Assembly: GCA_038496445.1 (NCBI GenBank)
Contig: JALMLS010000075.1
Coordinates: 248,001 to 312,000 of the forward strand
Direction: 5' to 3'
DNA from: Trichosphaerium sp. ATCC 40318
Taxonomy: Eukaryota; Protista; Tubulinea
DNA: 64,000 nt
The notes beneath the pieces are model-generated. The model saw only the letters and a list, made by a program, of their open reading frames with translations, was not told the origin of the DNA and searched no databases. Numbering within the stretch: the first letter of the stretch is position 1; the number at the start of each line of letters is the position of its first letter. Shown here in pieces: positions 29,861 to 57,894 of this stretch. Both the position numbers and the translations under genes were made by a program.

Positions 29861-31276
29861 ATGGCTAATAAGCACAGTAGCAAACTTACATTCCGATACA
29901 CAGCAGATTTCGCTGATACAATGGCACACAATGCGATTTGGATGCATTTATGCGCTAGAGGGTTTAATTATTCTACCTACCCAACAATTGAGCAGCATTC
30001 ATACTATCATTATTTATTTTCAACAGCAGAGGAGTTATTTACTGTGAACAGCGCTGAAAATGTATGGAAGTCAGTAAGCACTGCACATCAACGCAATGAT
30101 GGCTTTTGCCCACCAATACAAGTGAAGAGTATCCAAAACGCTTCGAAGAAAACCAACGTTAAACACCAACAGGAAGCTACAATAAACCGCTTACAACATG
30201 AACTCGCCCGTATCAAAAAAGAAAACATCAGGTTGAGGGAAGAAAACCAAAAAGCGAAAGTAACAGAGAGTGAGTTGCGTTCAAAACTCAAAACAATGCA
30301 AAGAAACAATGACATTAAAAAAAACCAAAGTCATAGTAAGTTGTTTATAGAGAAACGAGAGTGGGAAGCTGAGAAAAAAGGATTCAAAAGAGAACAGAAA
30401 CAAAACAAAGAAAAAATTGCTGACTTACAAGCTCACGTGACCAAAATTACGAAAGAGGCTAATACCAAAGTAAAGTCTCTACGAGAGCAGGGCAAAGATT
30501 GCGAGGCGAAGTACAAGAACGAACTTCAAAAGGCTTACGACACTTTGGAAGCAAAGAAAGAGGAACACAAGCGCTACATTGTTAAATTGTCCGGTACACA
30601 AAACGATGACGCTGTCCGAGACTTCTTAAACAACTATGACACTCTTGTTGATAATGTCTCTAATTTATACCTTGACGCTATGTACCACCATTTCTATATT
30701 TGTTTTACCATCTCTTTCTTACAACTGTTGTAGTCAATCTAAAGTGTTAACTGAAGAGGATAAAGTTCGTTTTTACTCAGAACTATATGGAGTTATAGCA
30801 ATAAACTGGTCAAATTTTGCGTTGAACAACAACATATTATTCAAGATAGAAGAACTAGCTAATACCCAGAAGTAAGTAGCTTATTCATTCCTGACAACTA
30901 ATTATCCTAGGCTTCAGACTGTTGTGGAAATAGTAAGCAATGAAATTTTGCTTGTATTCAAGATGTTCGATATTGGTATCGGTAAGAACTACATTGCTAC
31001 CTCGCTTATTGTAACGCGTAATTAGGTGACAGTTCTAAAGATATTAAAGACATTTCTTTGCAGGCAGTTTGGGCTTTACATACAATGGAAAGCAAGCTTA
31101 ACCCAAAAATCAAGTATTATCGTCCAAGACAAAAAGAACAATACAATCCAGCATCTCAACAATCTCGCCAAAATGCCATTGTACCTGTTGTAAAAGTGCT
31201 TATGCGACCAGGATTACAATGTGGTATCACTCAACGTATCATCAAGAAAGCAGATGTAATCACTCAACTACCTTAG
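29861..31276 (+). CDS. Coiled-coil protein with GrpE/MIEAP-like C-terminal head, paralog G2
   Basis: EEHKRYIVKLSGTQNDD, FYSELYGVIAINWS, final exon HTMESKLNPKIKYYRPRQKEQYNP...LMRPGL...RIIKKADV. Confidence 0.82.
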
Positions 31277-31450
31277 TACCTTGCACAAAATGCTTAAGTT
31301 TACACCAAAAATACTTTACTACAACAGTTTCACAGTCATGAGCGTCGTTTTAAAACAGGACTACAATAAACAAGACTGTCTCGTGCTCGTCATAATATGG
31401 TTTAGTTTATTCTGTTACACATAAAGCATCAAAACAGTTGTCCAATAAGT

Positions 31451-33526
31451 TCATTCCGATTCGCTATCATACTCAGATTCAGATTCAAATGCGCTTGCTG
31501 ATACAAAATTAGCTGTTGAATAAAAGAACTTTAGTCAACGTACTAGCGTATTCAATAGTTGCTTCATATTCACGTCCAGTGTCAACATCGCAAGCGGTTA
31601 TGTCAATAACCTCCCTTCCAAATCTCATACTTACCTCAACCATTCTGAATATTTTTCCAATTGTACTTTGAAGGCCAATACGTATTTTTCCGATTTTAAT
31701 GCATTCCCCAGTATCAACAAACTCAACATTTTTGGAAAAAGACTTGTAAAAGCGTATGGAAACCTCAGGTTGCATTGGAGACATCGGAGAAAATGTGTGT
31801 CTTATGACTTTATCGACACGCACCTCTTGCTGATAACTCACAAATTTACGGAAACCTTTAAAACGATAATAACCACCTGCAGCATAGTACTTTGGTTTTC
31901 CTTTGTCTCTAGATTCATTCCATGGCACAGCAACACGTACGCCATACGTGAACCGCATTATACGTGCTGCGATGATTGACAACTCAGCGCCTACTCTGTT
32001 GTTACCATTTTGTTTACAAGCGTCAACAATGTACCTATAAGAACTGCTCCATCAAGTGTAGCCTCACCAGGATATCTCGGTACAACTATTGATTTATTGA
32101 TTCGCTTGGAGAACTTTGAAATGATCCTGTTTTGTAACAGTAGTGAGGAGCCAAAGCCACCGACAATGAAGATGTAATCGAAGTTGCTTCCAGTTTTCTC
32201 CGCCATCGCTTTACATTGCTCCTCAACCAACTGCTCAATATTGTCCAATGTTGTTTCGAACAATAAACTAGCTTTAGGAACAATAATGGAACGTGAAGAT
32301 TTATCAAACGTGTCATTCTTGAACTGATCCAAAGAATCTAAGAACACGGAAGGTATCTAGTATAATTTTAGTTTTTCGGAAGTAAAAGCAAAAACTACAC
32401 GTACGTTATTGATAATTATACGCTTTGACTCATCTTTGACACGTATTTTAGCCTTTTGCCAGTCGGCTGACAATGACAACCATGCCTCAGGTTGTTTTTC
32501 CTTGAAGTCTGAGATCGTCTTTTCACCAAATTCGCTGACAAGAAATTTCTCAAAAGCAGCATCAATAACAGAGCTTCCATTGTGCCCTCCGGTGCCAACA
32601 GTAAGCTCAACGAGTTGATTATTTACCAACCTTGAAATAAGAATCAACTAATAAACACTCTGTAGTAGTACTTACCTATGAGCTACCAAATCTACAGTGC
32701 CGCCACCAGCGTCCAGAATAAGCAAGGTTTCGTTGTTTTGTAAACTTTTGCTTTGCCTCTCTCGCATATCAATACAATACCCAGCAGCAGCTTCAGGCTC
32801 TAGAACAAACCGAAAATTGCCTTTGTCACCCTTTTCATCAGATATCATTCCTACGGCCTTCAAGACATTAGAGTCTGAAAGTAGTACAATAAATCTGGAC
32901 ACGTACCTTTGCTGCTTTTATCATCGTAGCTTTTTCAGCGTCGCTCCAAATGGCTGGGATCGTCAAACACCACTGTATGATAAAATCCCATTCTCCTGAA
33001 CCGTAAGCGTTATCCCACTCAGATTCCAAGTCTCTCACCAACAGCTTGAGATAATCAACAATCACATCGAATGCCTTTTTCTGCTCTAATAAATTGTAAG
33101 GTTCTTGGAGCCTCCGTCTATTTTGTAGCACGTACGAGTCTTCGTAACATCATATACCATTCCACCAGGGTTTGTTTTTTCATAAATACCCATTTTGAAG
33201 TGCCTAATTTTGAAACGTTTGTATGCGAAAATTGTTGTTCAAAGCGCTTAAATATAGTTCTAGTACCTGTACAAAAACGTATTGGGGACTACAAGAGCAT
33301 CAGATCTCGCTTCAAAGCCCCACGAAACTATTTTTCCTTCCTCATCGTATAGAATCTCTGAGAGAGTTTTGACATAGGGCGTTGGCTGGCACTCCCAATT
33401 GTCCTTTTTAATAGGTTTCGAGTCATGACTGGGTTTGAAATACGCAAAACCACTGAAAGACGTTCCAAAGTCTATGGCTACTATCACGCGCTCGCGACGT
33501 TTGATTGCAGGAACAGTTGAAGCCAT
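31451..33526 (-). CDS. Divergent Hsp70, HSPA12-like (H-A), with short acidic tail
   Basis: VAIDFGTSFSGFAY, WCLTIPAIWSDAEKATM, LEPEAAAGYC, LDAGGGTVDL, VGGFGSS, RIMRFTYGV. Last exon TSAFESESEYDSESE*. No EEVD. Confidence 0.92.
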
Positions 33527-33571
33527 TCTTGTGTCGTTGAGGCACTGTACAACTTAAGTCACTAAGACATA

Positions 33572-33582
33572 TCTCTCAGAGA
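33572..33582. promoter_or_regulatory. Palindrome TCTCTCAGAGA in the 83-bp bidirectional promoter of H-A / G3
   Basis: Exact match between divergent ATGs at 33526 and 33610. Confidence 0.7.
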
Positions 33583-33609
33583 CTTTCAAGCATATTTTGA
33601 AGGGAAAAC

Positions 33610-34934
33610 ATGTCGTCAGGCTATTTGTACCAATACGATTTGAATTTCGCTAACGCAACTGCTAAATACATCATTTCGAACACCCTCTCTAAATCAAATA
33701 AAATGACCAGCGGTACTCGAATAGAACCAGCACCAAACGTTAGGGTCGCTGGCAAGCACTCTAAAGCAAAGAAACTATTTACGGAGAGTGACGCTGAACA
33801 AATACTCTACTCTCCTACCTATCGTAAGCGTGTGTCTAAATCTTCGACCCAAAGTGCTCAGCAAAAAGCTATTTGTGAAAAACAAACCCTTATAGACTCG
33901 CTCATACAGAATCAAGAACTGCTTACAAGAAAAATCGAGGAACTGAAAACAGAAAACAATAAACAAAGCAGAGAAGCACAAGCAATAATAACAACACAGA
34001 GGAACGAAATACAGTGCCTTAAAAAGCAACTTCAAACAAAACCAACACCACGTTTTTATAAGAGAGCTGATACCAAACGACAAATAAAAGCTTATACAAC
34101 CGAAATCAATACGCTCAAAGAAACAATTGCTATCAAAGAAAAGGAGAGAAAAGACCAAGTTCGTGCAAATCTTTTAAATATCGAACAAATTATTGAAGCC
34201 AATAAAGAAGATCATAAGCGATTTGTATTGAATCTATCAGGTACACAAAACAACGACAATGTACGAGAGTTTTTAGAACAATATGACCAGTTTGTTGGTG
34301 ATGTTACAGAACTCTTGCTTGACACAAAGTACAGTCCTATTTAGTCTACTCTATTTACTTATGATACTATAAGATACCCTGAGCATTTTCATGATGACGA
34401 TAAAGATGCATTCTACTCTAGAGTGTTTGGTGAACTTGCTATAAATTGGTCAACATTCTCCTTGAATCATGGCATACCGTATAAAATAGAAGAGCTAGCA
34501 GATGTTCAAAAGTACGATTTACTGTTTTTAAACCCCATACAACGCTGTACTAACGTTTAAATAAGGCAAGTCAAAGTGACAGAATACGTTAATAAATTAC
34601 TTTTTAAGCTGTTTGACACTTCTGGGATGTATCTCCGTACATCGAACTGTAAACCATTAGAATTCTGACTATTAACTTAGGCCCGGCGCTAGTAAATCTG
34701 CTGTATTCTATATCTTGGCAAGCTGTTAGTCTTGTACATACAATGGAAAGTAAACTGAACCCAAAAATCAAGTATTATCGTCCAAGACAAAAAGAACAAT
34801 ACAATCCAGCGTCTCAACAATCTCGCCAAAATGCCATTGTACCTGTTGTAAAAGTACTCATGCGACCAGGATTACAATGTGGTATCACTCAACGTATCAT
34901 CAAGAAAGCAGATGTAATCACTCAACTACCTTAG
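33610..34934 (+). CDS. Coiled-coil protein with GrpE/MIEAP-like C-terminal head, paralog G3
   Basis: EDHKRFVLNLSGTQNND, FYSRVFGELAINWS. Final 63 residues identical to G2. Confidence 0.82.
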
Positions 34935-35239
34935 AATAAACAACCTTTTTCTTTTGAATGAAGATGTGATACGTTTCAAGCGTTATGTTGGACTAGACAA
35001 TACTGACAATACAAAATCGGACAATAGATCGAACAATGGCAAGTAGCAAAGAATCTAAAATCCTTTTTCTTTTTGTTGTATTCCATTTTCTTTCAACATT
35101 GCATCTCACGAGTGTCTATAATGTAGAATAAATCCGCTCGTGTGGCTAGACCAGAGTAGCCAAAGACTGAGCGTCTTTCTACCAGAGGCGCCCTTCGATT
35201 GTATAGTCAACGTCAGTCCAATCTAACAAGTATGTAAAA

Positions 35240-35271
35240 TCTCTCAGAGATAAAAACAATTCTCTCAGAGA
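35240..35271. promoter_or_regulatory. Tandem palindromes TCTCTCAGAGA x2 upstream of Hsp70 H-B
   Basis: Exact matches at 35240-35250 and 35261-35271; ATG at 35308. Confidence 0.7.
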
Positions 35272-35307
35272 CTTTTCACTGTATTTTCAAAAACCAAGTT
35301 TGACTCA

Positions 35308-37185
35308 ATGGCAGCAACACCTCTTAAACGATCTGGTGTACGCTTTGTCGTAGGCCTAGACTTTGGAAACAGTAGTACTGGATGCGGCTTTATAGACTTG
35401 AGCGACAAACGTGAAGAGTTTCATGTATTAAACCTTTCTGGAACTCATGCAAGCTACGACAAGGATGTAAGTGCGATACTTCTCAAGAAGAATGAAACTG
35501 GATGGAAACTAGCAGCTTGTGGTATGGACGCGAAACTAGACTACATGAGTAACGAAGGAACCTCTACAACCCTTTTTTACACCGAGAGTATGAAAGCTCA
35601 TTTGGGGAAAGAAGTCTTCAACCACACTGCGACGACAGATACAATAGACGTTGAGTTTGTAATTTCTACGTACCTTGCTTGGATTAGAGAGACTGTTATG
35701 AAAGAGCTCGGAAAAGAAATGACGGGTGTCGATGCTCACGAACACGTTCGTTGGGTGTTCACTGTGCCAAACAATTACTCAGAAGAACAAATCGAAGCGT
35801 ATAAGAAGTGCATTATTAAGGTAAACCATTTTTTCTCTTTGGTTTGTTTGATTATGTATTGATTCATTGTTGTAGGCTGACTTCGTCGCGAAAGAGGGCG
35901 TTTCTGAAGAATTCTTGATGCTTGTTTCTGAAGCAGAGGCAGCTTCCGTTTATTGTCTGAAAGAGAAGGAGATTACACCAGAAGATGTCTTCTGTTTGTT
36001 GGTAATTGCTTCACTGCTTTAATGATTCTGACGTTATATTTTAGGACGCTGGTGGTGGCACGTGTGACATTACCACGTACAAAGTATCAAAAGGCTCAAA
36101 GCTAGAAGAACAAGCAGCAAAATCCGGTGAGAATATTGGATCAAAACTTCTTGATGAACGTTTCGTGTCACTTCTCAAGACGCGGTTTTCTGAAGAGACT
36201 ATTACGGATATTGCAAAAGAACACGGCGCTGCGTATTTAAAGTTCCTCTTTGCATGGATCACTGCAAAGGAGTCGCAGATAAACGGATACAAAGCAAGAA
36301 ACGTACCTCTTGGAGCACTAGTAGGGCCTCTTATTGAGAAAGGTGTATCAGATGAAGACGTGAATAGAGTGGCTTGTGTAAGAGTAAGTAACATCTTATA
36401 GTATCTACAAGTATTAATCGTACCAAGGTAACGGCAGAGAACATTCATACTATCTACGACAAAACATGTGATTCTGTTTGTACTTTTCTTCAAACTCATA
36501 TCGAGGAAGCTAGTAGCGATGGTATCTCTATTAAGGTACGATCTCATTGATACACATTAAACCGATAATATCGCTTACTATTTTAAAGCAAGTTTTCGTT
36601 GTCGGAGGCTTTGGAAGGAGCAAAATCCTTGCCGATAAGATAACCAAAAAGTTAGCTGTAATTGGGATATGCAAAGACCATATCAAGTTTCAAAAGTACT
36701 CTGGTCGTAGTGCGATGGCCGGAGCTGCGTTCATTGGTAAAGATCCTTCACTTGTACGTCTTAGAAAGATGGATAGAACGTACGGTATAGAAGCCTGTCA
36801 GGTGTATATGCCAGAGTTCCATGACGATTCTTTACCAAAAGTCATAAAAAACGGTGATTTCTACATTGAAAAGTTGTTTGAGTGTTTTGTTCAATACAAA
36901 CAACAGATTGAATTAAACCATACGGTGTCGAAGACATTTGACGTTCCTTCAGGCGCTTCTAGTCTCATTATTAAGCTCCTCAAGTCGTACAAAAAGAGCC
37001 CTATGTTGACGACAGACAGCAGTGTTGTTGAATGTGGACGTATTTTAGTACCTCTTTCAAGACCAACGCCAAAGACAATCACCATCGATTTCTGTCTTGG
37101 TAAAGTAGATATCTCAGTCAAAGCTTTTTTGAAAGACAGCGAACCTCAAGAAAGTAAAATTGGTTTCAACCCAAAATTCTGGTAG
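35308..37185 (+). CDS. Highly divergent Hsp70, HSPA12-like (H-B)
   Basis: VVGLDFGNSSTG, WVFTVPNNY, VSEAEAASVYC, LDAGGGTCDIT, VVGGFGRS, RKMDRTYGI. Confidence 0.85.
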
Positions 37186-37459
37186 TTCAACAATAAAAAA
37201 AAAAGATTCTTCTTTAAGTTGTTCTTTACTATCCATTGCATCTCTTTTTTTTTTTACTAAATGCTCCATATGTTCTACGCCTAGAAACATTTACGAACTC
37301 AAAAACAGTTCAAACCGCTGACAGTTTCCAAGCGGAGCAAAACAATGAGTTGGAAAGTAGTTTTGCACGTGCTTCCAAAACGTTATTGAAAATTTTATTT
37401 ATTGATCCGGCGCATTGCAATACTCTGCAAGTTCTCATTGGCGCTTTTTTCACCTTAGT

Positions 37460-37885
37460 CTAGCATCTGGGGACAGAATAAAATGCCAGTCTGAGCCAAA
37501 GACACCGAGCTACAAATGTGACGTTAACTCCTTTTCGTAAAAAACCCGACACCCAACTTACCTTGTCTGGTAGCGCTACCGGAGGATCAAGAACAGTTCC
37601 GTCGTCTTTAACGCCTGCAATTTTGACAATTTTTGCTTTATCAGATAGCACAGACCATACAGCATCTGCTGTCGGTGGTTTAGCTCCTTCAATCTTGATA
37701 TCGTTTGTGATATAGTTGTGTGGGCGATAATCAGCGTCAATAAGCTCTACTACAACCGATTTTACCTTCCCAGCGTCTCCATAGATATGTAGGGTTGCTC
37801 TTGGACTCTAAAGTACAAAATTACAACTAACGTGGATAAGATGTTGTAAACGCACTTCAAACTCGTGTTGGATCTTATCGGACAT
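37460..37885 (-). CDS. Hypothetical small protein
   Basis: MSDKIQHEFE, an intron, then an open exon (LHIYGDAGKVKSVVVELIDAD...). No family recognised. Confidence 0.45.
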
Positions 37886-38083
37886 CACGTGACTATTCTG
37901 AAAAATGGCGAAATTGCCAAAACAGACTTAATCAGTACGACTTACGGCAATCAAACCTTGCACTTAAATAGCTTCCTTTGGTAAATCGAACTTTTTGTTT
38001 GGTATTTACAACGTTACAGCCATGTCTGTAGGCATCGGACATTGTTTTCTATTTACAAGATTTTTTGTTGTGTACAGATTAAT

Positions 38084-39254
38084 TTACATAGCGGCACATC
38101 CTCGGAATTTTTTTCTTGGTTTTTTGTGCATATCAAGTACACTATCTACTGCCTCTCCAAAAACTACGCAAACAAAACATCAAATCACGTCGTTACAATT
38201 TTTTAATGGAAGTACCTTCTTTTACGCCCCATCCATTCTGAGCGCTAGTTTCAACGTAACTGTGTGCCTGGGTAATGTTGATTAGAATTTCGAAAATTAT
38301 CCAAAAACAAAAATAGTTTACTCGTATTTCCTTGGCTAAAAGAATGCCTTTTATCTGTGATATACAGTCTATAGAATCTTTCACTCGTGTATCAAGCTTT
38401 GTACCAACTAATATAATGGGTGTATCAGGACAGTAACGTCGTAACTCCAAATGCCACTAACAAACGAGTGAATTTCTCTTCGAAACACAGAAAATAAAAT
38501 CCAGTTTAATTTCTTTGAAAGGACAAATGCTCTATTAATACTATACCAGTGCGTATATTGTACCTTTTGTTCTATATTTTCATATGATTTCCAGTCATCT
38601 ATAGCAAAACAAAGCAAAAACACGTGCTACAGAGTTCCATCAATAAGAATTCAAATAAAAATACAAAAAAAAACCCATACTGCTCCAACATAGTCTAAGG
38701 GCCTCAATCTATCGTATTGCTCAAGACCTACAAAACGCTTATCATTACTTAACGCCTACAATACCAAATACTGTATTCCATGGTAGTTACAGCGATTTAA
38801 CGCACCTGCAGTATCCCATAGACCTTGATACAGGTTTAACAATGAAGTAAAAATAAAATAAAAAGAGTACCTAATTCCACGTGTATCGCATCAGAGCACG
38901 TGAGATTTACACTATTCACGCATTAATGCAAACAAAAAAAACAAAAGGAAAATAGAAAATACAAATTATTACATACACAAATGCGTCAAGGAGTGTAGGG
39001 ACATATGTATCCGAGAAGTGATCTGAAAACACGTTTAGAAAAAAAAATATCAAAAAAAAAAACTTAAACTCAATTAAAGCACGTGTTGTCGCCTGGTAAT
39101 AACGTACTTTTTGTGTATCTTATTAATAAAGACGTCTTACCTAAACGTTGAATTAAGTATGTATCATGGGTCCACTATTGTTTAATGTACCAACTTGACC
39201 GTCACCCACTATCACAAGCTTAATACATCTGCTGTTGGTACTTTGTTTTGACAT
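38084..39254 (-). CDS. Rac/Rho-family small GTPase with Leu at the Q61-equivalent position
   Basis: [46 protein letters not shown], polybasic tail and CAAM prenylation motif. Confidence 0.92.
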
Positions 39255-39389
39255 TTAACAAACTTTATTTTCCTACGCACAAAAGTCAACATTAGTATCT
39301 TGTAAATTACTGTTGCAAGAAAATACTAGCCGGAGAAATTAGGTCACTACTGAAAAACTACTAGAACCATCGAAACGAGCTCGTAACGG

Positions 39390-39520
39390 ATTGTGACGCT
39401 TTGGCGAGACTAGATTGTTTCGGTCTTGGGCGAAAGTACTTGATTTTCGGATTCAGTTTACTTTCCATTGTATCTAGCAAGACTGACTTGGAAGAAATAG
39501 TGTACACAGTCAACGTCACA
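39390..39520 (-). pseudogene. Orphan fragment of a G4/G5-type GrpE-like last exon
   Basis: cggtcttgggcgaaagtacttgattttcggattcagtttactttccattgtat is nearly identical to 51381-51433 (TMESKLNPKIKYFRPRPK), then degenerates with a deletion. Confidence 0.85.
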
Positions 39521-39587
39521 TTTTAGAACAGATTTTTATTAATTTGACAAGGAAGGCAACTGATTTGTATTCGTTGTTTTCAACCAA

Positions 39588-45135: not shown

Positions 45136-47647
45136 GGTAAAAAAACAGGGCAAGAGGATGTGAGGGGGCTTTATTTGAAAGCACTTTAGCGACAAATGCA
45201 CTTAGTTACAGGTACTACAGTCGCCATTGAGAGGCAGTACAACACTTGCAGTTGTACTAGGATGGATATCGGCATTACCTTTCCAACAGAAATTAAAGGA
45301 GTTGTAGATTTGTACTTCTGTGAAAGCCCAACCATCGTTAGCGAATACTCTCATCTCAACACCTTGAAGTGTCTTGTCGGTATTCTTTGCAGGTGCCATC
45401 ATGTAGAATAGATCGAGAGCGTCAGATTGAAACTCGTTGAGGCGGGGATCGACAATAGCATCGCTGTATGAAGAATTGGTTCCGTCAGTGTACACATATC
45501 GGTACTTGATTGGAGCATTTGTGCCACTGGATTGACCGTTGTCTGTCTTTGTCATTATCATTGTGTATTCGTTCACCACTTTCTCGTATGTGTCTCCAGA
45601 ACTGTGAGGGTTCGAACAGTTTGTCATGAAGAATAGGTTACACACACTGTTGGAGTAACTCGTGTAGTATCCACAGCGATCGTCTGCATTGCATAGTTGT
45701 TCACATTGAGTCTTCGTTACTGAGGTATCTGGAGGGAAGGAACATTCTCCTGAACCGCCAACCCAATCGCAGTGCGTTACTGTTGATCCAGGAACAGAAC
45801 CATTGCAGTACATAAATTGACCGGCATACATGTCTTTGCGACAGCCAGAACAAGTATTCTGAGCGTTGAGAATGGCTTTGTAGTTGAAGGCCAAGGCAAG
45901 TGAGATGCAGAGATAGAGTAGAATCGATGAATAGTTCATGATGAAAGGTACTTGTACGTTGAAGTAGAGTTGTTGTTTGTTGTTTGAAGGTTATTCGTAA
46001 ATGATGAGTCTTGACTTAAAGAGCGATTGCTAAGACATGTTAGCCTAAAACACGTGTGAACGGTAAACAAAAAGTGAAGCAAAAAGGCACCATGCTGCTA
46101 AAAAAAATACCAACAACAGTACAAACATATTTGGGATTAAAACTACGCGTTAACAGTAAACATTTATGAAAAAACCAGGAAATGAAAAAAAGAATACACG
46201 TGTTCGTCATGGTTATTGTGAACTGTGTTTTTTTGCCCTTTAAATAAACCAAGCGTTATTTAAACCTTAAAAATGAAGACTGGGGATTATTTTACATCAG
46301 TTCGGTTTGGTTTTGTTTTTATTGTTCAAAACGTTCACTGAACTATTATTTGTTTTGAAATAATTTCGCTCTTTTGCCGGCCCGTTCCACTTCTATGAAT
46401 AATGTGTTTCAGGTTTTGATATCCAAAGTTTGAGAAAGACGGAAATCTCAAAATAAACATTTCTTCAAAAACCACCTCTGTTTTTCGTCAAACTAAAAAA
46501 ATTCAGAAGGGTCTTCGTGCTACACTTTAACTTACAGTTTCTTGTTCAGTCTGGGTTCAATGTGCACAGAAACTTTGGTCTGCATCCTTAGGATCGCAGT
46601 ATTTTGGAAAGCGCTTGCCAAGGCATAGTGCTGTTTCTCGACAACAACTCCCAGTCTCAAAAGCTGCTTCCAGTATTCATCCAAATTTTCTTGATGAGAT
46701 TGCCTGCTACCATTTACAGAATGCCACGGTGTTTGTCGATTGCTCTGTGTACAATCTAAGTTGCAGTATTTGTAGGTATGTTTCAGAATGTTCTCATACG
46801 AGATTGTCTGCTCCATTAGCAAAACGCAGCTGGCGCTACCATTTATAGAACACCACAGGTGTTAGCCAAGTTGCCCTGTGTACAATCTAACTTGCAGTAT
46901 TTGTAGTTATGTTTTCAGAATGCTTGAAAGATACAAGTTCGCTCTCACTGTTACAAGACATGCTTTGATTTGCAGCATCAAATGAAGTACCATGCAGTTT
47001 TCGTAAAATTTAGTTTTTTTTTCCGACACTCTGAAGCTAGACCGCTGTAGTTGTGTAGTAGCTGTACCCCCAATAAACTTACTAATTCACGACACCAATC
47101 TGTGATTCATAGTGAGACTACAAACTAACAAAATCAAAATAGTCGCTTTCAATTGCTTGATGACACTTAACACAAGCGTCTCTTTAAACTTGCTTTTCTT
47201 TCCATCAGATACTAACAACAGTGCATGTTGATAGGTACAATGCACGCTAATACAACATAGTAATAGGTATCACAAAAGTGATCTCAACTACAACACTTTT
47301 TGATTGATTCACTCGCTGCCACATAGAGTTGATGCTACTGATCACCCTGTATGACATGTTTACATGTCGGTTTATCAATGTGTTATTTCTCAAGAAATCG
47401 CTTTACAAGTTTTATGGTCAGTCACGTGAACGCTTGTCATCTGAAAGCAGACTATTTTGTAGGTAGTTTGTTTTTTATTGTTGATTGCGTAGTACAGTAT
47501 TTCTTGTATTTGCAATAAAATATAAACACAGTGAAACGTACAACCTCATGGCTCTCACTATAGCTACGAAGATGTTCTCTTTCACACCGAAAATAATACT
47601 ACAAATTGTGAAGTTAGGATTTAATTTATTGAATTTATTTTCTCGCT
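45136..47647 (-). repeat. Right arm of the ~2.5-kb inverted duplication
   Basis: Reverse complement of 22772-25298. Confidence 0.95.
45202..45939 (-). CDS. Secreted PAN/apple-like + PLAT-like protein, copy 2
   Basis: Near-identical to 24489-25235 with small in-frame indels and substitutions. ORF intact. Confidence 0.8.
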   Translation of the reverse strand: MNYSSILLYLCISLALAFNYKAILNAQNTCSGCRKDMYAGQFMYCNGSVPGSTVTHCDWVGGSGECSFPPDTSVTKTQCEQLCNADDRCGYYTSYSNSVCNLFFMTNCSNPHSSGDTYEKVVNEYTMIMTKTDNGQSSGTNAPIKYRYVYTDGTNSSYSDAIVDPRLNEFQSDALDLFYMMAPAKNTDKTLQGVEMRVFANDGWAFTEVQIYNSFNFCWKGNADIHPSTTASVVLPLNGDCSTCN

Positions 47648-48173: not shown

Positions 48174-48934
48174 TATTGTCCGTATCATTCAAGTTTGCGA
48201 CAGGTTTGGCAGAAGTATCAAAGTGTAAGATCTTGTAAGTTCTGCTAGTTCTTGCAGGTTCTGTCAGATTTTGTCAGTTTTGATAGTTCTTGCAAGAACT
48301 GACAGCTTTGATAACAACTTAGCGGAACCAGTGCAATGTGAATGCATCACATTCTACAACTCATGACAATGTACCGTGCTTGCCGCACTTATGTACAATA
48401 AGGCAAGACGAAAAAGCAATGTGCCAAAAGTCATATCATTAATAATGATTTACTGTTAACTTACTAGCACCAGGCTTGAATTCTGGAACCTATTCAGGCG
48501 TAAAGAGGAGTATTAACCGCGAGAAAACGTTAGAACCTCAAAGAAAATTTCAAGCGCTTCCAAAGTATCTTGGGCTGAGCGTACGGTATTAACATAGCGT
48601 AATAATCTTTTTTAGAGTATAGGAGACAACTGTTGGATCTCATAGGTAATCAGAGACGTTAACAGAACTACACTAATGTACCAAATAAAATAATGGTTAA
48701 AAACACGTGGTCACAATAATATGTATGCGTTGTAGACGTGGATTTAGTTTTTTACCAGAACTGACAAGATCCGTCAGATCTTGTAGATTTTAGCAGATCT
48801 TGCAAGAACTAACAAGATCTTGTAAGAACTAACAGAAGTTGCAAGATCTGTCAGATCTGACTAAACACGAAAACCAAAAGTCACAATTAGCAAAAAGCTG
48901 CACAGATTAGCAAACTTGAATGATACGGACAATA
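48174..48934. mobile_element. MITE / non-autonomous DNA transposon with TIRs and TA flanks
   Basis: Perfect inverted repeat tattgtccgtatcattcaagtttgc (48174-48198) / gcaaacttgaatgatacggacaata (48910-48934), whose outer TA may be the TSD. Arrays of ~10-bp subterminal repeats (tcttgcaagaact, ctgtcagat). No transposase. Confidence 0.8.
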
Positions 48935-49049: not shown

Positions 49050-49297
49050 CCTCAAGATGCGAATTGTGTTTTTCATCAACTTAAAAATTGATTCAAAAGG
49101 TTTTCGTGTTACACTTTTACTTACATTTTCTTTTGCTCAGTCTGGTTCAATGTGCACAGAAACTTTCATCTTCATCCTTAGGATCTCAGTATTTTGGAAG
49201 CGCTTGCCAAGGCATAGTGCTGTTTCTAACCCACAACAACTCCCAGCTGTTCATCAAATTTTCTTATGAGATTGCCTGCTAACATTACAGAACGCGA
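49050..49297 (-). repeat. Third, more diverged partial copy of the duplicated segment
   Basis: Matches ~46445-46725 (gttcaatgtgcacagaaact, gcgcttgccaaggcatagtgctgtttct, gagattgcctgcta). Confidence 0.8.
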
Positions 49298-49559: not shown

Positions 49560-50822
49560 TCTTTCTGCCGTTTATACAGTTAAAGCCGTGACAGGCAGCC
49601 ATGAAAAAGGTCTCATCGATGGCAAGTATCTCTTTCCACGTATCAAAGCTTTTTAAACAAACAACCTAGGAGACGCGAAAACTGCCCGTTTTATGATGCA
49701 CGAGGCATAGCGTTTGACAAGCAAGGCGATGTACGCGTTTACTTGTAACATAGTGATAATCAGGCAAAATATTTATTTAGATTGTTTTAGATGATATAAT
49801 TACTGACAATTCAAATCATCTACTAAGAAAGTTGTGTATGTTTACAGGGATTGTAAGCACTGTTGAGTGTACAAAGAGTAAAGTGGAATTTCCACATGAT
49901 GTAGCAGTTGATAGTGATGGTAACATCTTAATTGCAGATGCTTCACATAGTGCACGTGTTTATTTTTTTTCCTTTTTTTTCTATTTTTTTTTTGTCTCTA
50001 CTCATTCCCATGAGACACTGTCTTCACATGTAAAACTAAAATGGTATTTGGTAATGTGTTGGCTTTAAAATTTTACTTTTAATGGTGGTTGTGCTGTTGC
50101 ACAATACATTTACTAGCGCATGAAAAAGAATGTGGCTCGTCTTGTTTAACTTGGCCCCACACCAATCCAAGCATATTTTTTGGACTTGTGGTATACACAG
50201 TTGATATTAATACTTTCTTTAGCGTATTATGTACATTGAAGCTGCTACTGGAGAGTTAAAGTTGTTACATAAGGAAAGACAAGGTGGTTGGCTTAGAAGT
50301 GTTGCTATTTCTCCTGAAGGGTATATTTGTTATGCAAACAGCACTAGAAACTGGGTACGCGTTAGTTGTGGTATATCAAGTGCATCAACACGAAATCCGC
50401 CACCTTTGGGGCAAATTGAGTTAGCAAATGCAAGGAATGTTGTGACAGACGATAACGGAAATATCTATGTTTCAAACTTTGATACTTTGGGTGTTGTCCC
50501 TCACAATGATAAACTACGTTTATATCCATTTAAGCTAGATACCTTAAGTCGATTATGCTATGTCAATGGTAAGACGAAAACCTAAATTAAATCAAATATT
50601 TTGTACTGTGATTACTTGTTCTAATTTTTTTTCATTGAAGGAAGTTTGATTTTTGGCAGTAGTAATAGGATGTACAGACTGTTTGTTGAAAATGAGGAGC
50701 TGATTGAAATAAACCTAGAAAACATAAACAATATGGTGAACATTAACAGTATTGTATATCACGACAAGATGCTGTACTTTTCGCATGACAACAGAATAAG
50801 CAAAATAGATATTATTTTGTAA
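49560..50822 (+). CDS. NHL-repeat (beta-propeller) protein, possibly pseudogenised
   Basis: DG..DAKTARF/DARGIAFDKQGD, ITDNSNHLLRK, FPHDVAVDSDGNILIAD. Apparent 1-nt frameshift in the T run at ~49690. Start not found. Confidence 0.65.
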
Positions 50823-51236
50823 AGCAAAAATTATGCGTAACCTTATGAAATAAAATTTATGCTCTGTTGCAAAGCATCGGTATCCATTATAGTAGATTGG
50901 TTATGCCTTGGTTGTCTATTGGACGAAATTTACACCCGATTCGTCTTTATGTGTATGAAAAGTAAGTTGTTTATTGCTATGAATATCACAAATTAAAGCT
51001 ATCATTTTCAAGTACTCGAGACATACCCATTCTAGTTAGCCATTATGTTCCTATCACTATGAAACACCTTATCTTAAACCGGTCATCGATATTGTTAGAC
51101 ATCCAAATAACTGTCAGTAGACTTGTCACCTAATTGTGCACGCACTCAGTCGCCATAAAAAGTCATAATAATCGTTTGCTCGCTTTGTCAGTACATGACC
51201 ACAAACATTCCACTGTTTGTAAATACAATATTTATT

Positions 51237-52752
51237 CTAAGGTAGTACAGTGATTACATCTGCTTGCTTGATGATACGTTGAGTAATACCACATTGTAGT
51301 CCTGGACGCATGAGAAGCTTTACAATAGGTACAATCGCATTTTGACGAGATTGGTGAGATGCTGGATTGTATTGTTCTTTCGGTCTTGGACGAAAGTACT
51401 TGATTTTCGGATTCAGTTTACTTTCCATTGTATGTAGCAATGATACTGCCTGCGAAGAAATATTGCTTATTGTCAATTCCATGTTTTCGTCTGTTTAAAA
51501 ATTAATATCATTACATTGAATAGTGGCTTCGTACCTTTCTCAATCTGGTATGTAGTAAGAACTTTTGATACTGATGCATAGACAAGTAAAGATATGTACT
51601 GGTGCCTGTTAAGAAACTGTTAAGAAAGTAAGAGATAAAAAGCAGACTGATAAGCGTACTTTCGAGGATCATCTAGCTCTTCAAGTTTAAAAGGTATCTT
51701 ATTATTGAGCGAAAATGTTTGCCAATTAATAGCAAGAACGTCAAACAATGCTGAGTAAAAAGAATCACTCTTGTCAGTAGGTAAGTGAGCTGAACCCCTA
51801 AATAAAAGGTTAAAAACGTGTTAGAGGTTTACTCACGTGGCATCCAGAAACAGATTAGTAACATTGTCTACAAACAATTCATAGTCATGCAAAAAGTCTC
51901 TGACGCTATCGTCGTATTGTGTTCCCGATAGCTTGATCATAAAGCGTTTGTGTTCCTCTTTTTTTTTCTCTAAGGCATCGTAGAACTTACGTTGCACAGT
52001 TTGAAGCGCATTCTCATGATACTCCTTGTTTTTCTTGAGCTCTTCTTTCAAACACGTGATTTTTTCTTCAGCTTCTGTTTTCGCTTTTCTTTCCTTGTTG
52101 ATAGCTTCAGTACGTACGCGTTGAAGATCTTTAGAGTGACGATATTTAATTGTAATCAACTCTTCTCTCAGAGACTTGACGTGAGTGCTTCTCGGTTTTT
52201 CCTTTGCAATTCTCTTTTCTCTTTGGCCTGCTTCGCTTTTAGTTTTTTGAAACCTTCCTTTGCTTGTTTACGCTGATTCAGTCTGTTGTCTTTCTCTTCT
52301 TTCAATTGTTGTTTAAGTTCTTCAATTGTAGCGCCTACAGTTTTCTCCAGGGTGCTTTTGATATCCAGTTCTTTGTTCAACGCCTTGTTTTCTTCTTTGG
52401 CTACACGTAAAAGAGTGTTTAAATCCTCCTGCTCGCTTACAAGCGAAAATATTAGGCGAGTTTTTTCTTGGAGCAAAGATTTTTCTTCTTTCGGTACTCG
52501 TATATCTCCAACTTGTACGGAGGCTGCACGGGCACGTTTTTGAACTATTACTGATCCCCAAACCTCGGTAACTTGTTTATCAGTTGAAAAAAATCGATCA
52601 GATGGCTTTGATTGTCCAAATATGGTGTAGTTTGGCGCAGGGGTAATGTTGATGCTTTTTGAGGTGTTTGTCCTGGTTTGTGCTAGATAGACTGAAAGAG
52701 CCTTTTTAACAATTGATTTAGCGAAGCGTTGGCTATATTCATACTTTTCCAT
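51237..52752 (-). CDS. Coiled-coil protein with GrpE/MIEAP-like C-terminal head, paralog G4
   Basis: MEKYEYSQRFAK...; EEHKRFMIKLSGTQYDD; last exon PKIKYFRPRPKEQYNPASHQ...LMRPGL...RIIKQADV. Confidence 0.82.
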
Positions 52753-52791
52753 GGCGTTTGTTTTCAAAAAAAAAAAAGAAGAATCTACTTG

Positions 52792-52934
52792 TCTCTGAGA
52801 CGTTTTCTTCACTGAACTTTGATGTTACAGTACACCTTTTCTAAACCGATAAATAATTCGTTTCGGTTTACATAAAATGGTACATTGTAGATTCTTGCAT
52901 AGATAACTGTTCCCAACATATAATCTCTGAGAGA
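52792..52934. promoter_or_regulatory. Bidirectional promoter G4 / H-C with TCTCTGAGA(CG) (52792) and TCTCTGAGAGA (52924-52934)
   Basis: Partial and exact motif copies between divergent ATGs at 52752 and 53058. Confidence 0.6.
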
Positions 52935-53057
52935 TAATACCTTAAAAAAGCTATGTACTCTCTCCCAGTCTATTTTGAAGCAACTGTACTATAACATGAC
53001 TGAACCAAAAAAGGTTGTAAGACTTAACAACTGATATTAATCTACCAAATATTACAA

Positions 53058-55983
53058 ATGGCAACTGCTACTCCGGCTATAAAGCCCCGTGAACGTATTG
53101 TCGTAGCTGTAGACTTTGGTACTTCGTTTAGTGGGTTCGCATACTTTAAACCTGGGCATGATACCAAACCGATTAAAAAAGACAATTGGGACTGTCAACC
53201 AACACCATACGTAAAGACCCTCTCAGAGATACTTTACGATGAGGGTGGAAAAATTGTTTCTTGGGGATACGAAGCTAGATCTGACTCTCTTATAGTCCCA
53301 AATACGTTTTTATACAGGTACTGAACTACATAACAAGAATACCCCTTCTTCCAGAGAAATCTCTGTTAATTGCTACCTAGGCACTTTAAGATGGGAATTT
53401 ACGAAAAAACGAACCCTACTGGCATGGTCTATGATGCTACAAACACTCGTAAGTTGTCTACCTTTGATTCGAATTTATGTGTACATCTTTTCAAGGATTA
53501 ACTTTTGATTTAGAACAGAAAAAGGCTATTGATGTGATTGTAGACTACCTCAAGTTGCTTGTACAAGACTTAGAGTCTGAATGGGATAACGCATATGGTG
53601 TTGGGCAATGGGACTTTATAATCCAATGGTGTCTAACAATTCCAGCTATTTGGAGTGATGCCGAAAAAGCGGCAATGATAGAAGCTGCAAAGGTACCTAA
53701 AAGCAACTACCCATTCTGTCACGTGCTAATTGTCTTGGAGGCTGTTGGCATGATATGTGATTCTAACGGTGGTATGAGTAACTTTAGGTTTGCTCTAGAG
53801 CCTGAAGCTGCAGCTGGGTATTGTATCGACATGCGCGAGAGACAAGGACGAAAACTGCGAAACAATGAAACTCTTCTCGTTTTAGATGCTGGTGGAGGAA
53901 CAGTCGATTTGGCTGCTCATAGGTAAGCGGTAGTTACTGTCGGTGTGATACTGATATTCCAATGTAGGTTGGTACAAAACCAACTTGTTGAACTCACTGT
54001 TGGAACCGGTGGTCATTTTGGAGGCTCCAAAATCGATGAAGCGTTCGAACTATTTCTGTCTGACACCTTTGGTGAACCATTGATCAAACAATTCAAGGAG
54101 GACCAACCTGAGGCGTGGCTATCATTTTTAGCGAGCTGGCAAAAGGCTAAAATACGCGTAAAAGATGAATCAAAAAGGATAATCATTAACGTAAGTGAAT
54201 TTTCGGAAAATCTTTCAACATGTAAGTTTTTTTTTAGGTTCCGCCTGCAATGTTCGCTTTGTTGAGTAAGCTTGAGAAGAGTAGTGTATTTGACAAATCT
54301 TCTCGTTCTGTTATCATTCCTAAAGCGAGTGTATTGTTTAAAAGCACTCTAGACAACATCGAAAAGTTGGTTGAAGAGCAATGTAAAGCTATGAAAGAGA
54401 AAACTGGAAATAACTTCGATTACATCTTCATTGTCGGCGGTTTCGGGTCTTCTGTTCTTCTGCAGAACGTAATTAAATCCAAGTTTTGTTCACGTATCAA
54501 TAAGGCAATTGTTGTTCCGAGATACCCTGGCGAAGCTACACTCGATGGTGCAGTGTTAATTGGTAATCACATTTTTTTAATTGTTGCTCGGCTTTGTTAC
54601 TGACCTTTATACCAGGAGCGGATAAGTCGATTATTGCAGCACGTATTATGCGGTACACCTATGGAGTAGAATACACACGTAGTTTTGATGTTTCGAGCGA
54701 TGATATAGCGAGGAAGAAACGCTTTCCAGGCCGTAGTGAAGATGTTTGTGTACGCTGTTTTGATACTTTTGTAAAGTATCAAGATGAAGTCCACGTGGAT
54801 AATGTGATCAAACGGAAGTATCAAGCGGTTTCCCCAAAGCAAGGCATCATTCAAATCAACTTCTTCAAGTCATTTAGCAAATCAGTTAAGTACGTTGATG
54901 CTGGAGAATGTGTTAAGCTCGGTGCTATATCTGTCGATATTAAGAGTACTATTGGGCAAGAAAACCGAGAAGTTGAAGTCCAAATGTCGTTTGGAAGAGA
55001 GCTCATAACTATTACTGCTGTAGATATCAATACCAAAAAAGAATATGATGCGAGTATAAAGTACTCAAGTGCGTCAACATGCACAGAAAACACACGTGTC
55101 GCTTTGTTTTTTGATGTTGTTTATAGCGAGTCTCTTTGAAACAGGTGAATTAGAAGAACCGGAAAACAAGGCTATATCTTTAGACGTATGTTTTGTTATT
55201 GACGTTACCGGTAGCATGGGAAGATATATTGATGGTGTAAAGAAAAATGTTCCGATAATCGTTAAAAACATAGTTGAAGCATGCTCTTGCTTTGGTCATT
55301 CTGCTACAATTCGAATGGCTCTTGCTATGTACCGAGATTTTGTAGATGGTGCTGATAGACTCTCAGGAATTGATTTCTGTCAGTATAGTCCCGACAAGAA
55401 TGAAGACGAATTGAAAAAGGTAGTAGTTGTTGATTCATTCATTCTCACAATATTGTAAAGGTTATTTCGAAGTTGAAACATACCTTCGCTGAAGGCGGTG
55501 GCTCTCCTCCTGAAGAAGATGTGATTGGTGGTTTAGACTACGCCCTATCTTATTCATGGACAGCTGACAAGAAAGTGATGTTTCTCATTGGTGACGCACC
55601 TTGTCATAATCCAAAGGTTAGTATAAACCAGTAAGAAAGAAACCTAATGCTCTTTATAAGTACTCTGGGAGGACATCCGGAGATACGCATCCTGATGCCT
55701 ATACCACTGGGTTTGTTAATCCAGAAAATGTTTTGTCGCACATTAGAAATCAAGGTACATATGACTATCCTTTTTGTCTTAACTTTCGATAGAAATTGAG
55801 CTATTCTTCATAAAGTTGAATGAGTCTACCAACTACATGATAAACTACTTTAAGGGTATTTATGATACAGACGAGCGTAAATTAGAAACCATGAATATGG
55901 TCAATGCCACAAGCAGTGTCGAGATTAATAGGCTGCTTGGTGAACACGTGACAGCAACACTGGTTGCAACTCTGTTTAAATAG
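53058..55983 (+). CDS. Divergent HSPA12-like Hsp70 fused to C-terminal vWA domain (H-C)
   Basis: Close paralog of H-A. After the intron at which H-A enters its tail, the frame continues into LDVCFVIDVTGSM (MIDAS), YRDF, EGGG..PEEDVIGGL, FLIGDAPCH. Confidence 0.88.
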
Positions 55984-56365
55984 TAGCCAGCTCAACTAAT
56001 TACAAATAAATCCCACACTGAAAGTAAGACCTTTGTTGTATTAAGCTGTAGTATTATACGTCTGTAAAACATGTGGGACATATTGATTGTGTTGCTCTTT
56101 GTAACGAGTATAAACAGAATAAAATTATACTTGACAGCAACATGATCTTGTTTTTGTATTATACAATAACTTGTGATAATCGTCTTACACAACTGTTGTC
56201 TAGCAATAAACGCTTGGCGGTGGAACCAAAAGCCAACAATATTTCACTTGAAATCCATTTGTACTACACAACAACTCATTCTTTTCGTCAAGGCATAACA
56301 ACTCAATAGTAATTTTCGGCTTTATTCTTTTGGAGCATTTTCGTCGAATGGTTAATTAAGTACAC

Positions 56366-57894
56366 TCATTTTTGAATGGCACCTTCCCCAGAATTATTTT
56401 GGGCAACAATGGTGGCCGGTACTCGTGGAGTTAATCCGTCTCCTGGTAGTATAGTGATTACATCTGCTTGCTTGATGATACGTTGAGTAATACCACATTG
56501 TAGTCCTGGACGCATGAGAAGCTTTACAATAGGCACAATGGCATTTTGACGAGATTGGTGAGATGCTGGATTGTATTGTTCTTTCGGTCTTGGACGAAAG
56601 TACTTGATTTTCGGGTTCAGTTTACTTTCCATTGTATGTAGCAATGACACAGCCTGCGAAGAAATCTCATGTATCGTTCTTTTAGTTTCCTCGTCTAAGA
56701 ATCCATCAGTAACATAAATAGTGCAAGACTGCTTACCAAGTATGAAGCTAAACGACTTAAACAGCTCGAAAACCGAGTCTCGTACAAGCTGTGATACAGT
56801 CTCAAGCCTTTGTATTACGTTAGATGTGATAGCGTTAAATCAACTTACTTTTTGGGGTCGTCAAGGTCTTCCACTTTGTACTGGAGCTTGTTGTTAAGAG
56901 CGAAGGTTGACCAATTGATAGCAAGAACGCCAAACAACTGCGAATAAAAGAGACTGCTCTCTTCATCTGCGATTGATGTCACCGACCTACAAGTTATTAA
57001 TATAACAAAGTCCACATGGAGAAAAAACCTAAACCCATACGTTACATCAAGATAGAGATTAGATACATTGTCAAAGAACGTTTCATATTGCTCCAAAAAA
57101 TCGCGAACACTGTCATCGTTTTGAGTACCAGAGAGCTTGACCATAAAGCGTTTGTTCTCCTCTTTCTTGGTCTCCAAAATATCATTAAACTTCTCTTGGG
57201 CTGTTTGTAGTTCTTTCGTATGCGACAGATGGTCTTTTTTGATTTTATCTCTGAGAGACTTTACTTCTTTTTGGGCTTCTATTTTTTCTTTTCGTAGCTT
57301 GTTGACTGCGTCACCGTGCTGTTTCTCTAGCGTTGTAATACGATCTTTCAAAGCCTTTTGGTCTCTCTTGTTGGCACGTTGTTCGCTTCCAAGTTTGTTT
57401 TTTTCGGCTTCCCATGCTCTCTTCGCGGTTTGGTGGGTAGCTCTGAGTTCTCGGAGTTTACTGGAATGGTCTGAGTCATTCTTTCGAATTTTTGATCGCA
57501 GGTCGCTCTCTATCGCCTTTGACTTAGCTTTCTCTTCCTTTAGCTTGATGTTCTCTTTCTTGACGCTTGCTAGTTCATCTTTTAACGCTTTTAGAGTAGC
57601 TTGGAGATCGTCTTGTTCTTTTTTTTGGTTTTGTAGATGTTGGTCCCATGTTTGTTGTTGATGCTCGCTTGGTTTGCTACCTTTGCAGACGGTATTCCAT
57701 ACTTTCTTTACGTCATCTTTTGTAAACAACAAGCCAGACGGACCAAAGATCGAGAAATATGGCGCAGCGCTAATTTTAGCGTAGTGAGCGTGATTGAAGC
57801 CGCTCGTACGCAAATAATTCCAAATTACAGTCTCCGCTATACCACGAGCAAATCCAGCCGAGTAAACGTAACTATCAGTACTAATTTCAGCCAT
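56366..57894 (-). CDS. Coiled-coil protein with GrpE/MIEAP-like C-terminal head, paralog G5
   Basis: EENKRFMVKLSGTQNDD, FYSQLFGVLAINWS. Head nearly identical to G4 plus a ~25-aa extension. Confidence 0.82.

Follow-up and report, generated by a model that had tools for sequence, protein, structure and literature searches.

The G genes and their Hsp70-like neighbours

The window, that is the whole stretch of 64,000 nucleotides analysed here, contains five coiled-coil paralogues of four exons each (G1 to G5), which flank three genes for HSPA12-like proteins of the Hsp70 type (H-A, H-B and H-C). G1, G2, H-A, G3 and H-B are referred to as cluster A, and G4, H-C and G5 as cluster C:

28184-29608, plus strand: G1 (manual gene model), exons 28184-29010, 29073-29192, 29240-29310 and 29352-29608
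29861-31276, plus strand: G2, exons 29861-30681, 30734-30871, 30911-30981 and 31026-31276
31509-33526, minus strand: H-A, HSPA12-like Hsp70-type ATPase, open reading frames (ORFs) with three ATPase motifs
33610-34934, plus strand: G3, exons 33610-34328, 34374-34511, 34566-34636 and 34681-34934
35308-37185, plus strand: H-B, a third and distant Hsp70-like paralogue, 3' of G3
51237-52752, minus strand: G4, exon 1 at about 52752-51837, then 51797-51660, 51605-51535 and 51490-51237
53058-55139, plus strand: H-C, HSPA12-like ATPase with a vWA-like part from about 55069
56366-57894, minus strand: G5, exons 57894-57041, 56986-56849, 56807-56737 and 56694-56366

The G proteins begin with about 85 variable residues, which are followed by a long coiled coil and a helical segment that is conserved; the C-terminal 65-70 residues, encoded in exon 4, are called the head here. 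Exon 1 contains coiled-coil-like sequence, and towards the N-terminus the proteins differ strongly, with 21-33% amino-acid identity. The initial annotation had left G1, the fifth paralogue, out of its positional set; the head of G1 is divergent, and its intron phases (2,2,1) are the same as in G2 to G5. The acceptor-like motif ttgcag/GCAGTT lies inside exon 4, the true start of which is about 26-40 nt upstream (31026, 34681, 51490 and 56694). Exon 1 of G4 has a frame break near 52200-52180, in or beside an A-run. In G5 the stop codon of the family has been lost, which adds 25 residues, and intron 3 (42 nt) is in frame and free of stop codons. An independent G3 transcript from another strain, L009, matched the genomic G3 junctions at 98.7% identity; it confirms introns 1 and 2 and retains intron 3, which would end translation before the head, so that the head may not always be translated. 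It was the only transcript found; scans of metagenomes gave no other and a single chance 20-mer match, and the head ORFs of G2 and G4, looked up as exact sequences, gave no match.

G1 to G5 are confined to this one locus, with no further copies in the rest of the genome. The spliced gene models were searched one exon at a time, and folding was likewise performed on pieces, not on the joined proteins. A HMMER search with the head profile against 1.84 billion representatives returned three matches, one of which was the G3 head ORF and the other two short ORFs from metatranscriptomes, and a word-indexed protein search with G2 exon 1 gave no match. G1 to G5 are an orphan eukaryotic gene family that was undescribed until now.

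The G genes adjoin the Hsp70-like genes closely, and G3/H-A and G4/H-C have divergent promoters in common. The 3' end of H-A faces that of G2 (tail-to-tail), and its 5' end faces that of G3 (head-to-head), with 83 nt separating the H-A and G3 start codons; H-C lies head-to-head with G4 at a distance of 305 nt. In five ORF segments that could be aligned, H-A and H-C are about 70% identical in amino acids (from 48 to 84% in the individual segments), with a proportion of synonymous differences (pS) of 0.76 even where amino-acid identity reaches 84%; what H-B has in common with them is limited to three colinear ATPase motifs. These motifs are present in H-A, H-B and H-C in the form that we take to be that of HSPA12. 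The likeness to HSPA12A/B consists of these motifs and of the match of one H-C exon to PF00012 clusters in the ESM Atlas (score 0.94, 190 features in common). Exon-wise Pfam searches of H-C gave weak matches to VWA_4 (E 1.5e-4) and HSP70 (E 0.061), and a PDB sequence search gave a weak DnaK match only. In contrast to HSPA12A/B, the H genes are protist genes, a fusion to a vWA-like part occurs in one of them, and every H gene has a dedicated coiled-coil gene linked to it.

Homogenised tracts at the end of the coding sequences

The heads of G2 to G5 contain the following tracts of high nucleotide identity, to which a degraded copy in cluster A's vicinity is added:

31052-31276, plus strand: G2 head tract, with 31105-31276 as the most recent sub-tract
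34710-34934, plus strand: G3 head tract
39380-39502, minus strand: decayed relic of a G4/G5-type head; an unrelated ORF for a membrane protein lies about 110 nt upstream of it
51237-51462, minus strand: G4 head tract
56441-56666, minus strand: G5 head tract

A repeat search recovered the repeats at the positions initially reported, aligning 31052-31276 with 34710-34934 (93% over 225 nt) and 51241-51492 with 56445-56696 (92%), and between-cluster repeats of the heads are 86-87% identical. Over 172 nt in the terminal part of exon 4, identity is 98% for G2-G3 (169/172), 96% for G4-G5, 87-89% between clusters and 56-59% against G1. The similarity is limited to the tail of the genes, as had been proposed, starting about nine codons into exon 4 and ending at the stop codon: identity drops from 77-98% in the tract to 14-48% past both ends, and there is no alignment of the introns, of roughly nine codons with which exon 4 opens or of the 3' flanks. 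The near-identity first noticed in the final ~195 nt of G2 and G3 is borne out by only 6 differences in the core (HTMESK...LP); all of them are synonymous, and the 65-residue head peptide is therefore identical. The G4 and G5 heads have 5 core differences, one of which is a V/I replacement, and the motifs quoted for them (YFRPRPK, SHQ, IVKLL, KQAD) are correct. The first part of the tract (31052-31104) shows 94% identity for G4-G5 and only 77% for G2-G3. Over 66 nt the relic is 94-95% identical to G5/G4 and 81-85% to G2/G3; it lies 4.5 kb from G3, and its 5' boundary coincides with that of the homogenised tracts. In every copy, the relic included, an acceptor-like pyrimidine-CAG motif stands at this edge.

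Near-identical exons could in principle be a collapsed or consensus product of the assembly, which is a general risk with repeats. However, the four head copies differ from one another (3-13% of sites), each has flanks of its own, and L009, a contig from an independent transcriptome, agrees with the genome at the G3 junctions and connects exons 1-3 in their G3-specific form with the head of G3 and the 3' flank behind it. Assembly collapse is ruled out because this independent transcript exists, and we consider the probability of an artefact to be minimal. Of the six sites that distinguish G2 from G3, two are in the G2 state in L009, which may stem from a chimaeric assembly of this transcript.

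The homogenisation is visible at synonymous sites. In exon 4, pS is 0.18-0.24 for pairs from one cluster and 0.34-0.41 for pairs from different clusters, and synonymous sites of exons 1-3 are saturated (0.53-1.0). The G1 head is not homogenised with those of G2 to G5 (48-52% amino-acid identity, pS 0.73-0.76). Codons for the same residue are identical in 89-91% of cases in the tract within a cluster and in 73-78% between clusters, compared with 38-55% in other conserved exons (Fisher p from 0.013 to 1e-7). Against G1 the corresponding figure for the heads is about 50%, and the head is therefore under no intrinsic codon constraint. Changes in the tract are overwhelmingly at third positions.

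The tree of the heads is at odds with the remainder of the genes. For the heads, 15 informative sites support (G2,G3),(G4,G5) and none supports either alternative (AU p<1e-4). This grouping conflicts with exon 1, in which BLASTP finds G2-G5 as the strongest pair (163 bits, 38% over 284 aa) and G2-G3 as the weakest (64 bits). Maximum-likelihood topology tests of exons 1-3 favoured no topology (summed lnL -3046.2 for the within-cluster, -3048.1 for the positional and -3050.8 for the other arrangement). Of the positional pairing proposed initially, G2-G5 stands firmly by exon 1, but G3-G4 is weak: the best exon 1 partner of G3 is G4 (99 bits), but that of G4 is G5 (157 bits). Synteny and a weak sequence signal are suggestive of positional orthology between G3 and G4.

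Probable gene conversion and competing explanations

The tract and where it ends, the signal at synonymous sites and the conflict between trees lead us to infer tract-limited interlocus gene conversion, to which we assign a probability of about 75%. An old inverted duplication would have produced two G-H-G triads, between which synonymous sites are now saturated. Afterwards, the last ~225 nt of the coding sequences of G2, G3, G4 and G5 would have been repeatedly overwritten by non-reciprocal copying between paralogues, most frequently and most recently between the direct-repeat neighbours 3.7 and 5.2 kb apart (G2-G3 and G4-G5), and more rarely or longer ago between the inverted clusters, 16-25 kb apart. 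The G1 head (56-59% nucleotide identity) may have diverged too far to take part. The tract would be restricted to the sole segment that protein-level constraint has kept similar enough for heteroduplex formation, and for this reason its ends would fall at the beginning of the conserved head and at the stop codon. The contrast between G4-G5 and G2-G3 in 31052-31104, together with the G2-state sites in L009, suggests more than one conversion event. As a point against conversion, GC3 does not rise in the tract, and a signature of GC-biased conversion is therefore not seen.

Gene conversion is a known, textbook mechanism; what is new is the G family. Concerted evolution through such conversion, at times limited to a tract or an exon, is known, for example, from the inverted duplicates of Drosophila hsp70 and from primate globin and opsin genes. 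As in such systems, the paralogues lie a few kb apart on one chromosome, their similarity is graded with distance, and a segment of low synonymous divergence with sharp boundaries has a tree at odds with that of its flanks. The present case differs in that the tract is confined to the final ~225 nt of the coding sequence, in four genes of two inverted clusters, that the remainder of these genes is down to 20-40% amino-acid identity, and that the 5' edge is common to all tracts and to a non-coding relic. With regard to these edges, random tract ends leave the common 5' boundary of all pairs and the relic unexplained, and three of the four tract ends lie at coding landmarks, which pure selection would also give; both observations run counter to conversion.

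Indeed, the head could simply be the most constrained domain, its similarity being due to purifying selection, possibly down to codons, with no conversion at all. It is the best conserved part even in comparison with G1, with 48-52% amino-acid identity where other exons have 9-41%, and the tract ends match the conserved peptide. However, such selection cannot give 98% DNA identity between G2 and G3 while the remainder is 30% identical as protein. Synonymous sites are saturated against G1 inside the head itself, as they are in exon 1 of H-A and H-C despite 84% amino-acid identity, and the head tree contradicts exon 1. Purifying selection without conversion is already disfavoured, and we regard it as very unlikely.

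An element acting at the nucleotide level, such as a structured RNA, a regulatory site or an antisense feature, might also fix the DNA sequence of the tract. Consistent with this, the boundaries are sharp and common to the copies, the pyrimidine-CAG motif marks the 5' edge, and the adjacent upstream intron 3 is the one retained in the sole transcript. Explanations by RNA structure or an Rfam family were rejected, as RNA folding is not in excess (z +1.07 and -1.06) and Rfam gave no match. Moreover, G1 has kept the peptide and not the nucleotides, and the predominance of third-position changes is what would be expected of coding sequence. An element of this kind is thus very improbable.

The initial annotation had proposed one docking head per cluster, maintained to match the Hsp70 of that cluster. 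In this case selection would keep one head type to fit H-A or H-C, and conversion would merely be the vehicle. Seven amino-acid replacements are fixed between the heads of clusters A and C, with none or one within clusters, G3/H-A and G4/H-C are divergently transcribed pairs, and a possible similarity to the GrpE beta-domain would make the head a contact surface. Nevertheless, the replacements are conservative (Y/F, V/I, V/L, K/Q, Q/H, Q/P) and accompanied by about eight fixed synonymous changes, and a dN/dS of roughly 0.3 does not indicate positive selection. The rule of one head per cluster is not borne out in cluster A, which has two head types (that of G1, which is very different, and that of G2/G3) and two Hsp70 types (H-A and H-B), and a relic of the G4/G5 type adjoins this cluster. 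Distance and orientation alone predict the same pattern. Selection for matching is not needed because distance-dependent conversion would explain the within-cluster pattern, and we consider it rather unlikely.

Possible relationship of the heads to GrpE

The description of the heads as GrpE-like, also made initially, is supported by one profile-profile match to the GrpE beta-domain, but Pfam, HMM and PDB searches yielded nothing, nor did two AlphaFold models. In hhalign, the head profile matched this domain with P 9.7e-4 or 1.8e-4, a score reached by 0/300 column shuffles and above that of all 250 real-protein decoys; the signal comes mainly from L007, P0003 and G1, and the G2 and G3 heads alone give none. 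Pfam scans of every G exon and of distant relatives detected no GrpE at E<=1 or E<=10, a GrpE HMM run against all 749 ORF pieces of the window ranked the heads among noise, and a PDB sequence search with the head profile gave a chance match only (E 1). For the head, the ESM Atlas returned nothing usable. AlphaFold models of the head (mean pLDDT 59.7) and of a 187-residue relative (43.2) were both too poor, and Foldseek on the former was meaningless. For exons 1-3, entered as exon fragments in rows on the natural transcript L009, hhalign gave a spurious 15-column match to GrpE (P 0.057).

GrpE (PF01025) is the nucleotide exchange factor of DnaK and of mitochondrial Hsp70; it has a dimeric long helix, a four-helix bundle and a C-terminal beta-domain marked by an FDP..H and RPA.V signature. 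The G proteins may resemble it in the succession of their parts, in which helices and then a small, putatively beta-rich C-terminal domain follow a long coiled coil, in a profile match that runs to the C-terminal end of both proteins, in a G/K-E-x-F/Y-N-P-x-x-H/Q motif with a basic-x-A-x-V ending, and in the linkage of their genes to Hsp70-type ATPases. In contrast to GrpE, they have no Pfam or HMM match, their helical part is unmatched, and their neighbours are HSPA12-like, not DnaK-like. A canonical GrpE (C7) is encoded elsewhere in the genome. A GrpE likeness of the head is plausible at most. Our best guess, to which we give a chance slightly below even, is docking of the head on the Hsp70-like ATPase encoded next to it, as the GrpE beta-domain does on its partner. 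Going further, G1 to G5 might be new GrpE-derived exchange factors or adaptors for HSPA12-like ATPases, with a head kept uniform by conversion, variable N-termini by which clients or signals are chosen, and a switch for the head in the form of intron 3 retention; this we hold to be doubtful.

The function and co-chaperones of HSPA12 have been described as unknown (PMC13580251), and we found no partner of HSPA12 described in the literature searched. If the G proteins were indeed GrpE-derived factors, Hsp70s of the HSPA12 type would gain their first co-chaperone, and a head that docks as the GrpE beta-domain does on DnaK would offer a direct handle on their regulation. To conclude, the locus is a clean, small example of conversion, with heads 96-98% identical in genes that are otherwise at 20-40%. 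The more useful lead is the G family itself, almost without relatives among the 1.8 billion representative proteins searched, confined to one locus and arranged head-to-head with HSPA12-like ATPases.

Gene models and the Hsp70-like neighbours

The window, part of contig C32 of a 70-Mb genome, is eukaryotic DNA with introns, and its 28-58 kb portion carries five paralogous coiled-coil genes (G1-G5) beside HSPA12-like Hsp70 genes (H-A to H-C). Models were built manually, with reading frames, GT-AG sites and comparison among the paralogues as guides, and sequence searches were run on them exon by exon. Each G gene has four exons, with intron phases 2, 2 and 1 and intron sizes of 39-56 nt. Cluster A holds G1, G2, H-A, G3 and H-B; cluster C holds G4, H-C and G5.

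Genes of the locus (window coordinates)
28184-29608, +: G1, manual gene model
29861-31276, +: G2, manual gene model
33526-31509, -: H-A, Hsp70-like, with G2 on one side and G3 on the other
33610-34934, +: G3, manual gene model
35308-37185, +: H-B, Hsp70-like, 3' of G3
about 52752-51237, -: G4, manual gene model
53058-55139, +: H-C, Hsp70-like, flanked by G4 and G5, running on into a vWA-like part
55069-55458, +: vWA-like segment after H-C, same orientation (Pfam VWA_4, E 1.5e-4)
57894-56366, -: G5, manual gene model

The starts of G3 and H-A lie 83 nt apart on opposite strands, and those of G4 and H-C 305 nt apart. Apart from two fragments, six-frame searches of the whole genome recovered no further head (the C-terminal part of the G proteins, in exon 4), exon 1 or H-A/H-C-type sequence.

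Two models depart from the family pattern. Exon 1 of G4 has a frame change in or beside an A-run (52180-52200, -) where the paralogues are unbroken, and the distance from one conserved motif to the next is about 7-8 residues shorter there. Either G4 is a pseudogene or the run contains a homopolymer error. G5 lacks the family stop codon (TAG after ...LP), so that 25 extra residues are read (56366-56445, -). Its intron 3 (42 nt) is in frame and stop-free, and the head would thus stay in frame even unspliced.

Other repeats were noted. A recent segmental copy on another contig (L124, G000:C60:36500-39093) matches window 57798-60290 with 97% identity over 2.3 kb and the first ~32 codons of G5 with 93%; it stops inside G5 exon 1, its end adjoins a ~100-nt piece resembling window 25675-25767, and it may extend past these limits. 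At 48221-48856, short degenerate repeats (variants of CAGATCTTG/CAAGAACTG, recurring every 9-10 nt) form two partly inverted blocks ~500 nt apart. A 95-nt direct repeat (46554-46648 and 49144-49237; spacing 2.59 kb, identity 87-93%) sits in cysteine-rich-looking ORFs and could mark a further paralogous exon pair.

Probable conversion of the head tract

Comparison of repeats within the window confirmed the claim of the initial annotation that heads are repeated within clusters; the 'ttgcag' taken there as the start of exon 4 proved only acceptor-like, exon 4 starting upstream of it. Homogenisation sets in about nine codons past the start of exon 4 and extends as far as the stop codon.

Nucleotide identity in two parts of the tract (G2 coordinates)
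31105-31276 (172 nt): G2-G3 169/172; G4-G5 165/172; between clusters 87-89%; to G1 56-59%
31052-31104 (53 nt): G2-G3 77%; G4-G5 94%; between clusters 77-81%; to G1 55-60%

Outside the tract, in intron 3, at the start of exon 4 and in the 3' flank, identity is 14-48%, too low for alignment. Of the informative sites in the 195-nt core, 15 favour (G2,G3)(G4,G5) and 0 either other topology, and the AU test rejected both alternatives (p<1e-4). Among the per-exon phylogenies this core tree is decisive; for exons 1-3, the three topologies are indistinguishable by maximum likelihood.

Synonymous divergence and codon usage point to conversion, not constraint, as the source of the head-tract similarity. 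By the Nei-Gojobori method, pS is low in exon 4 (G2-G3 0.24, G4-G5 0.18, between clusters 0.34-0.41) and saturated in all pairs in exons 1-3 (0.53-1.0). H-A and H-C are likewise saturated, at pS 0.76 overall; even an exon 84% identical as protein reaches 0.77. Where residues agree between paralogues, the codon agrees too at 73-91% of sites within the tract, compared with 38-55% in the remaining conserved exons (Fisher p 0.013 to 1e-7). When the head is compared with that of G1, only ~50% of codons agree, so codon choice in the head is not intrinsically constrained; in the tract, neither an excess of RNA folding, nor an Rfam match, nor a rise in GC3 was found.

Exon 1 gives relationships opposite to those of the head. 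Its bit scores are 163 for G2-G5 (38% over 284 residues), 157 for G4-G5, ~100 for G2-G4 and 99 for G3-G4, and only 64 for G2-G3 despite identical head peptides. Of the pairs previously drawn from gene order, G2-G5 is well supported by sequence and G3-G4 weakly: G3 has G4 as best partner, with a common three-residue insertion and PAPN motif in their N-terminal regions, but the best partner of G4 is G5. G3 looks fast-evolving.

Conversion would have occurred more than once, the two sub-tracts (31105-31276 and 31052-31104) differing in history. 3' of an unrelated gene lies a decayed head relic (~39380-39502), which matches G4/G5 at 94-95% identity and has the 5' edge common to all head tracts. 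The only family transcript found, an independent transcriptome contig from another strain (L009, JGI 3300016894), is a cDNA of G3. Its head has the G2 state at 2 of 6 sites differing between G2 and G3, adjacent and synonymous (961 and 964, window 34856 and 34859), and the G3 state at the other 4 and both flanks. The cause is a polymorphic conversion of short length or else chimaeric assembly. From this transcript introns 1 and 2 have been removed exactly as modelled, but intron 3 is retained (L009 668-1048, window 34563-34943). Translation of such an RNA would stop short of the head (…GMYL plus 10 residues); the retention may be alternative splicing governing head attachment.

The head, GrpE and the Hsp70-like genes

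The description of the head as GrpE-like drew support from one profile-profile test only. Heads and distant relatives had no Pfam match to GrpE, a GrpE HMM did not detect the heads among all window ORFs, a sequence search of PDB with the head did not find GrpE, and two low-confidence AlphaFold models did not support the similarity. The PF01025 search of the genome found solely a canonical GrpE, whose beta-domain exon lies on contig C7 (G000:C7:359947-360090, 32.5 bits), not on that of the window. The genome thus has a normal GrpE besides the G family. With hhalign, a profile of the five heads and two distant relatives (L007, P0003) was compared with 21 diverse GrpE sequences, and its last 50 residues aligned to the GrpE beta-domain, collinear to both C-terminal ends (P = 9.7e-4; 1.8e-4 in a second, local run). 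The score was matched by 0/300 column shuffles and exceeded all 250 decoy segments from real proteins. The signal came mainly from the distant relatives and G1; G2 or G3 heads alone gave none. The Hsp70-type neighbours leave few co-chaperone families as likely candidates beforehand, and on that prior we put true GrpE-beta homology at a little under even odds.

The metatranscriptome relative L007 (JGI 3300030743, 140-1377) has the same layout as the G family, a coiled coil followed by an unbroken 187-residue ORF with a terminal head. It also carries a poly-Thr run, and its two ORFs overlap at 814-946 in different frames.

The proposal that heads are matched to their own cluster's Hsp70 found no support here. 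Fixed head differences between clusters are conservative (dN/dS roughly 0.3), cluster A combines two head types with two ATPase types, and a relic of cluster C type sits near cluster A; distance and orientation would be enough to account for neighbours being most alike. Our best guess for the G proteins, judged from sequence, is that they may have a docking or co-chaperone role: their head is conserved and possibly similar to GrpE, they contain a coiled coil, and some of their genes share divergent promoters with those of Hsp70-like ATPases.
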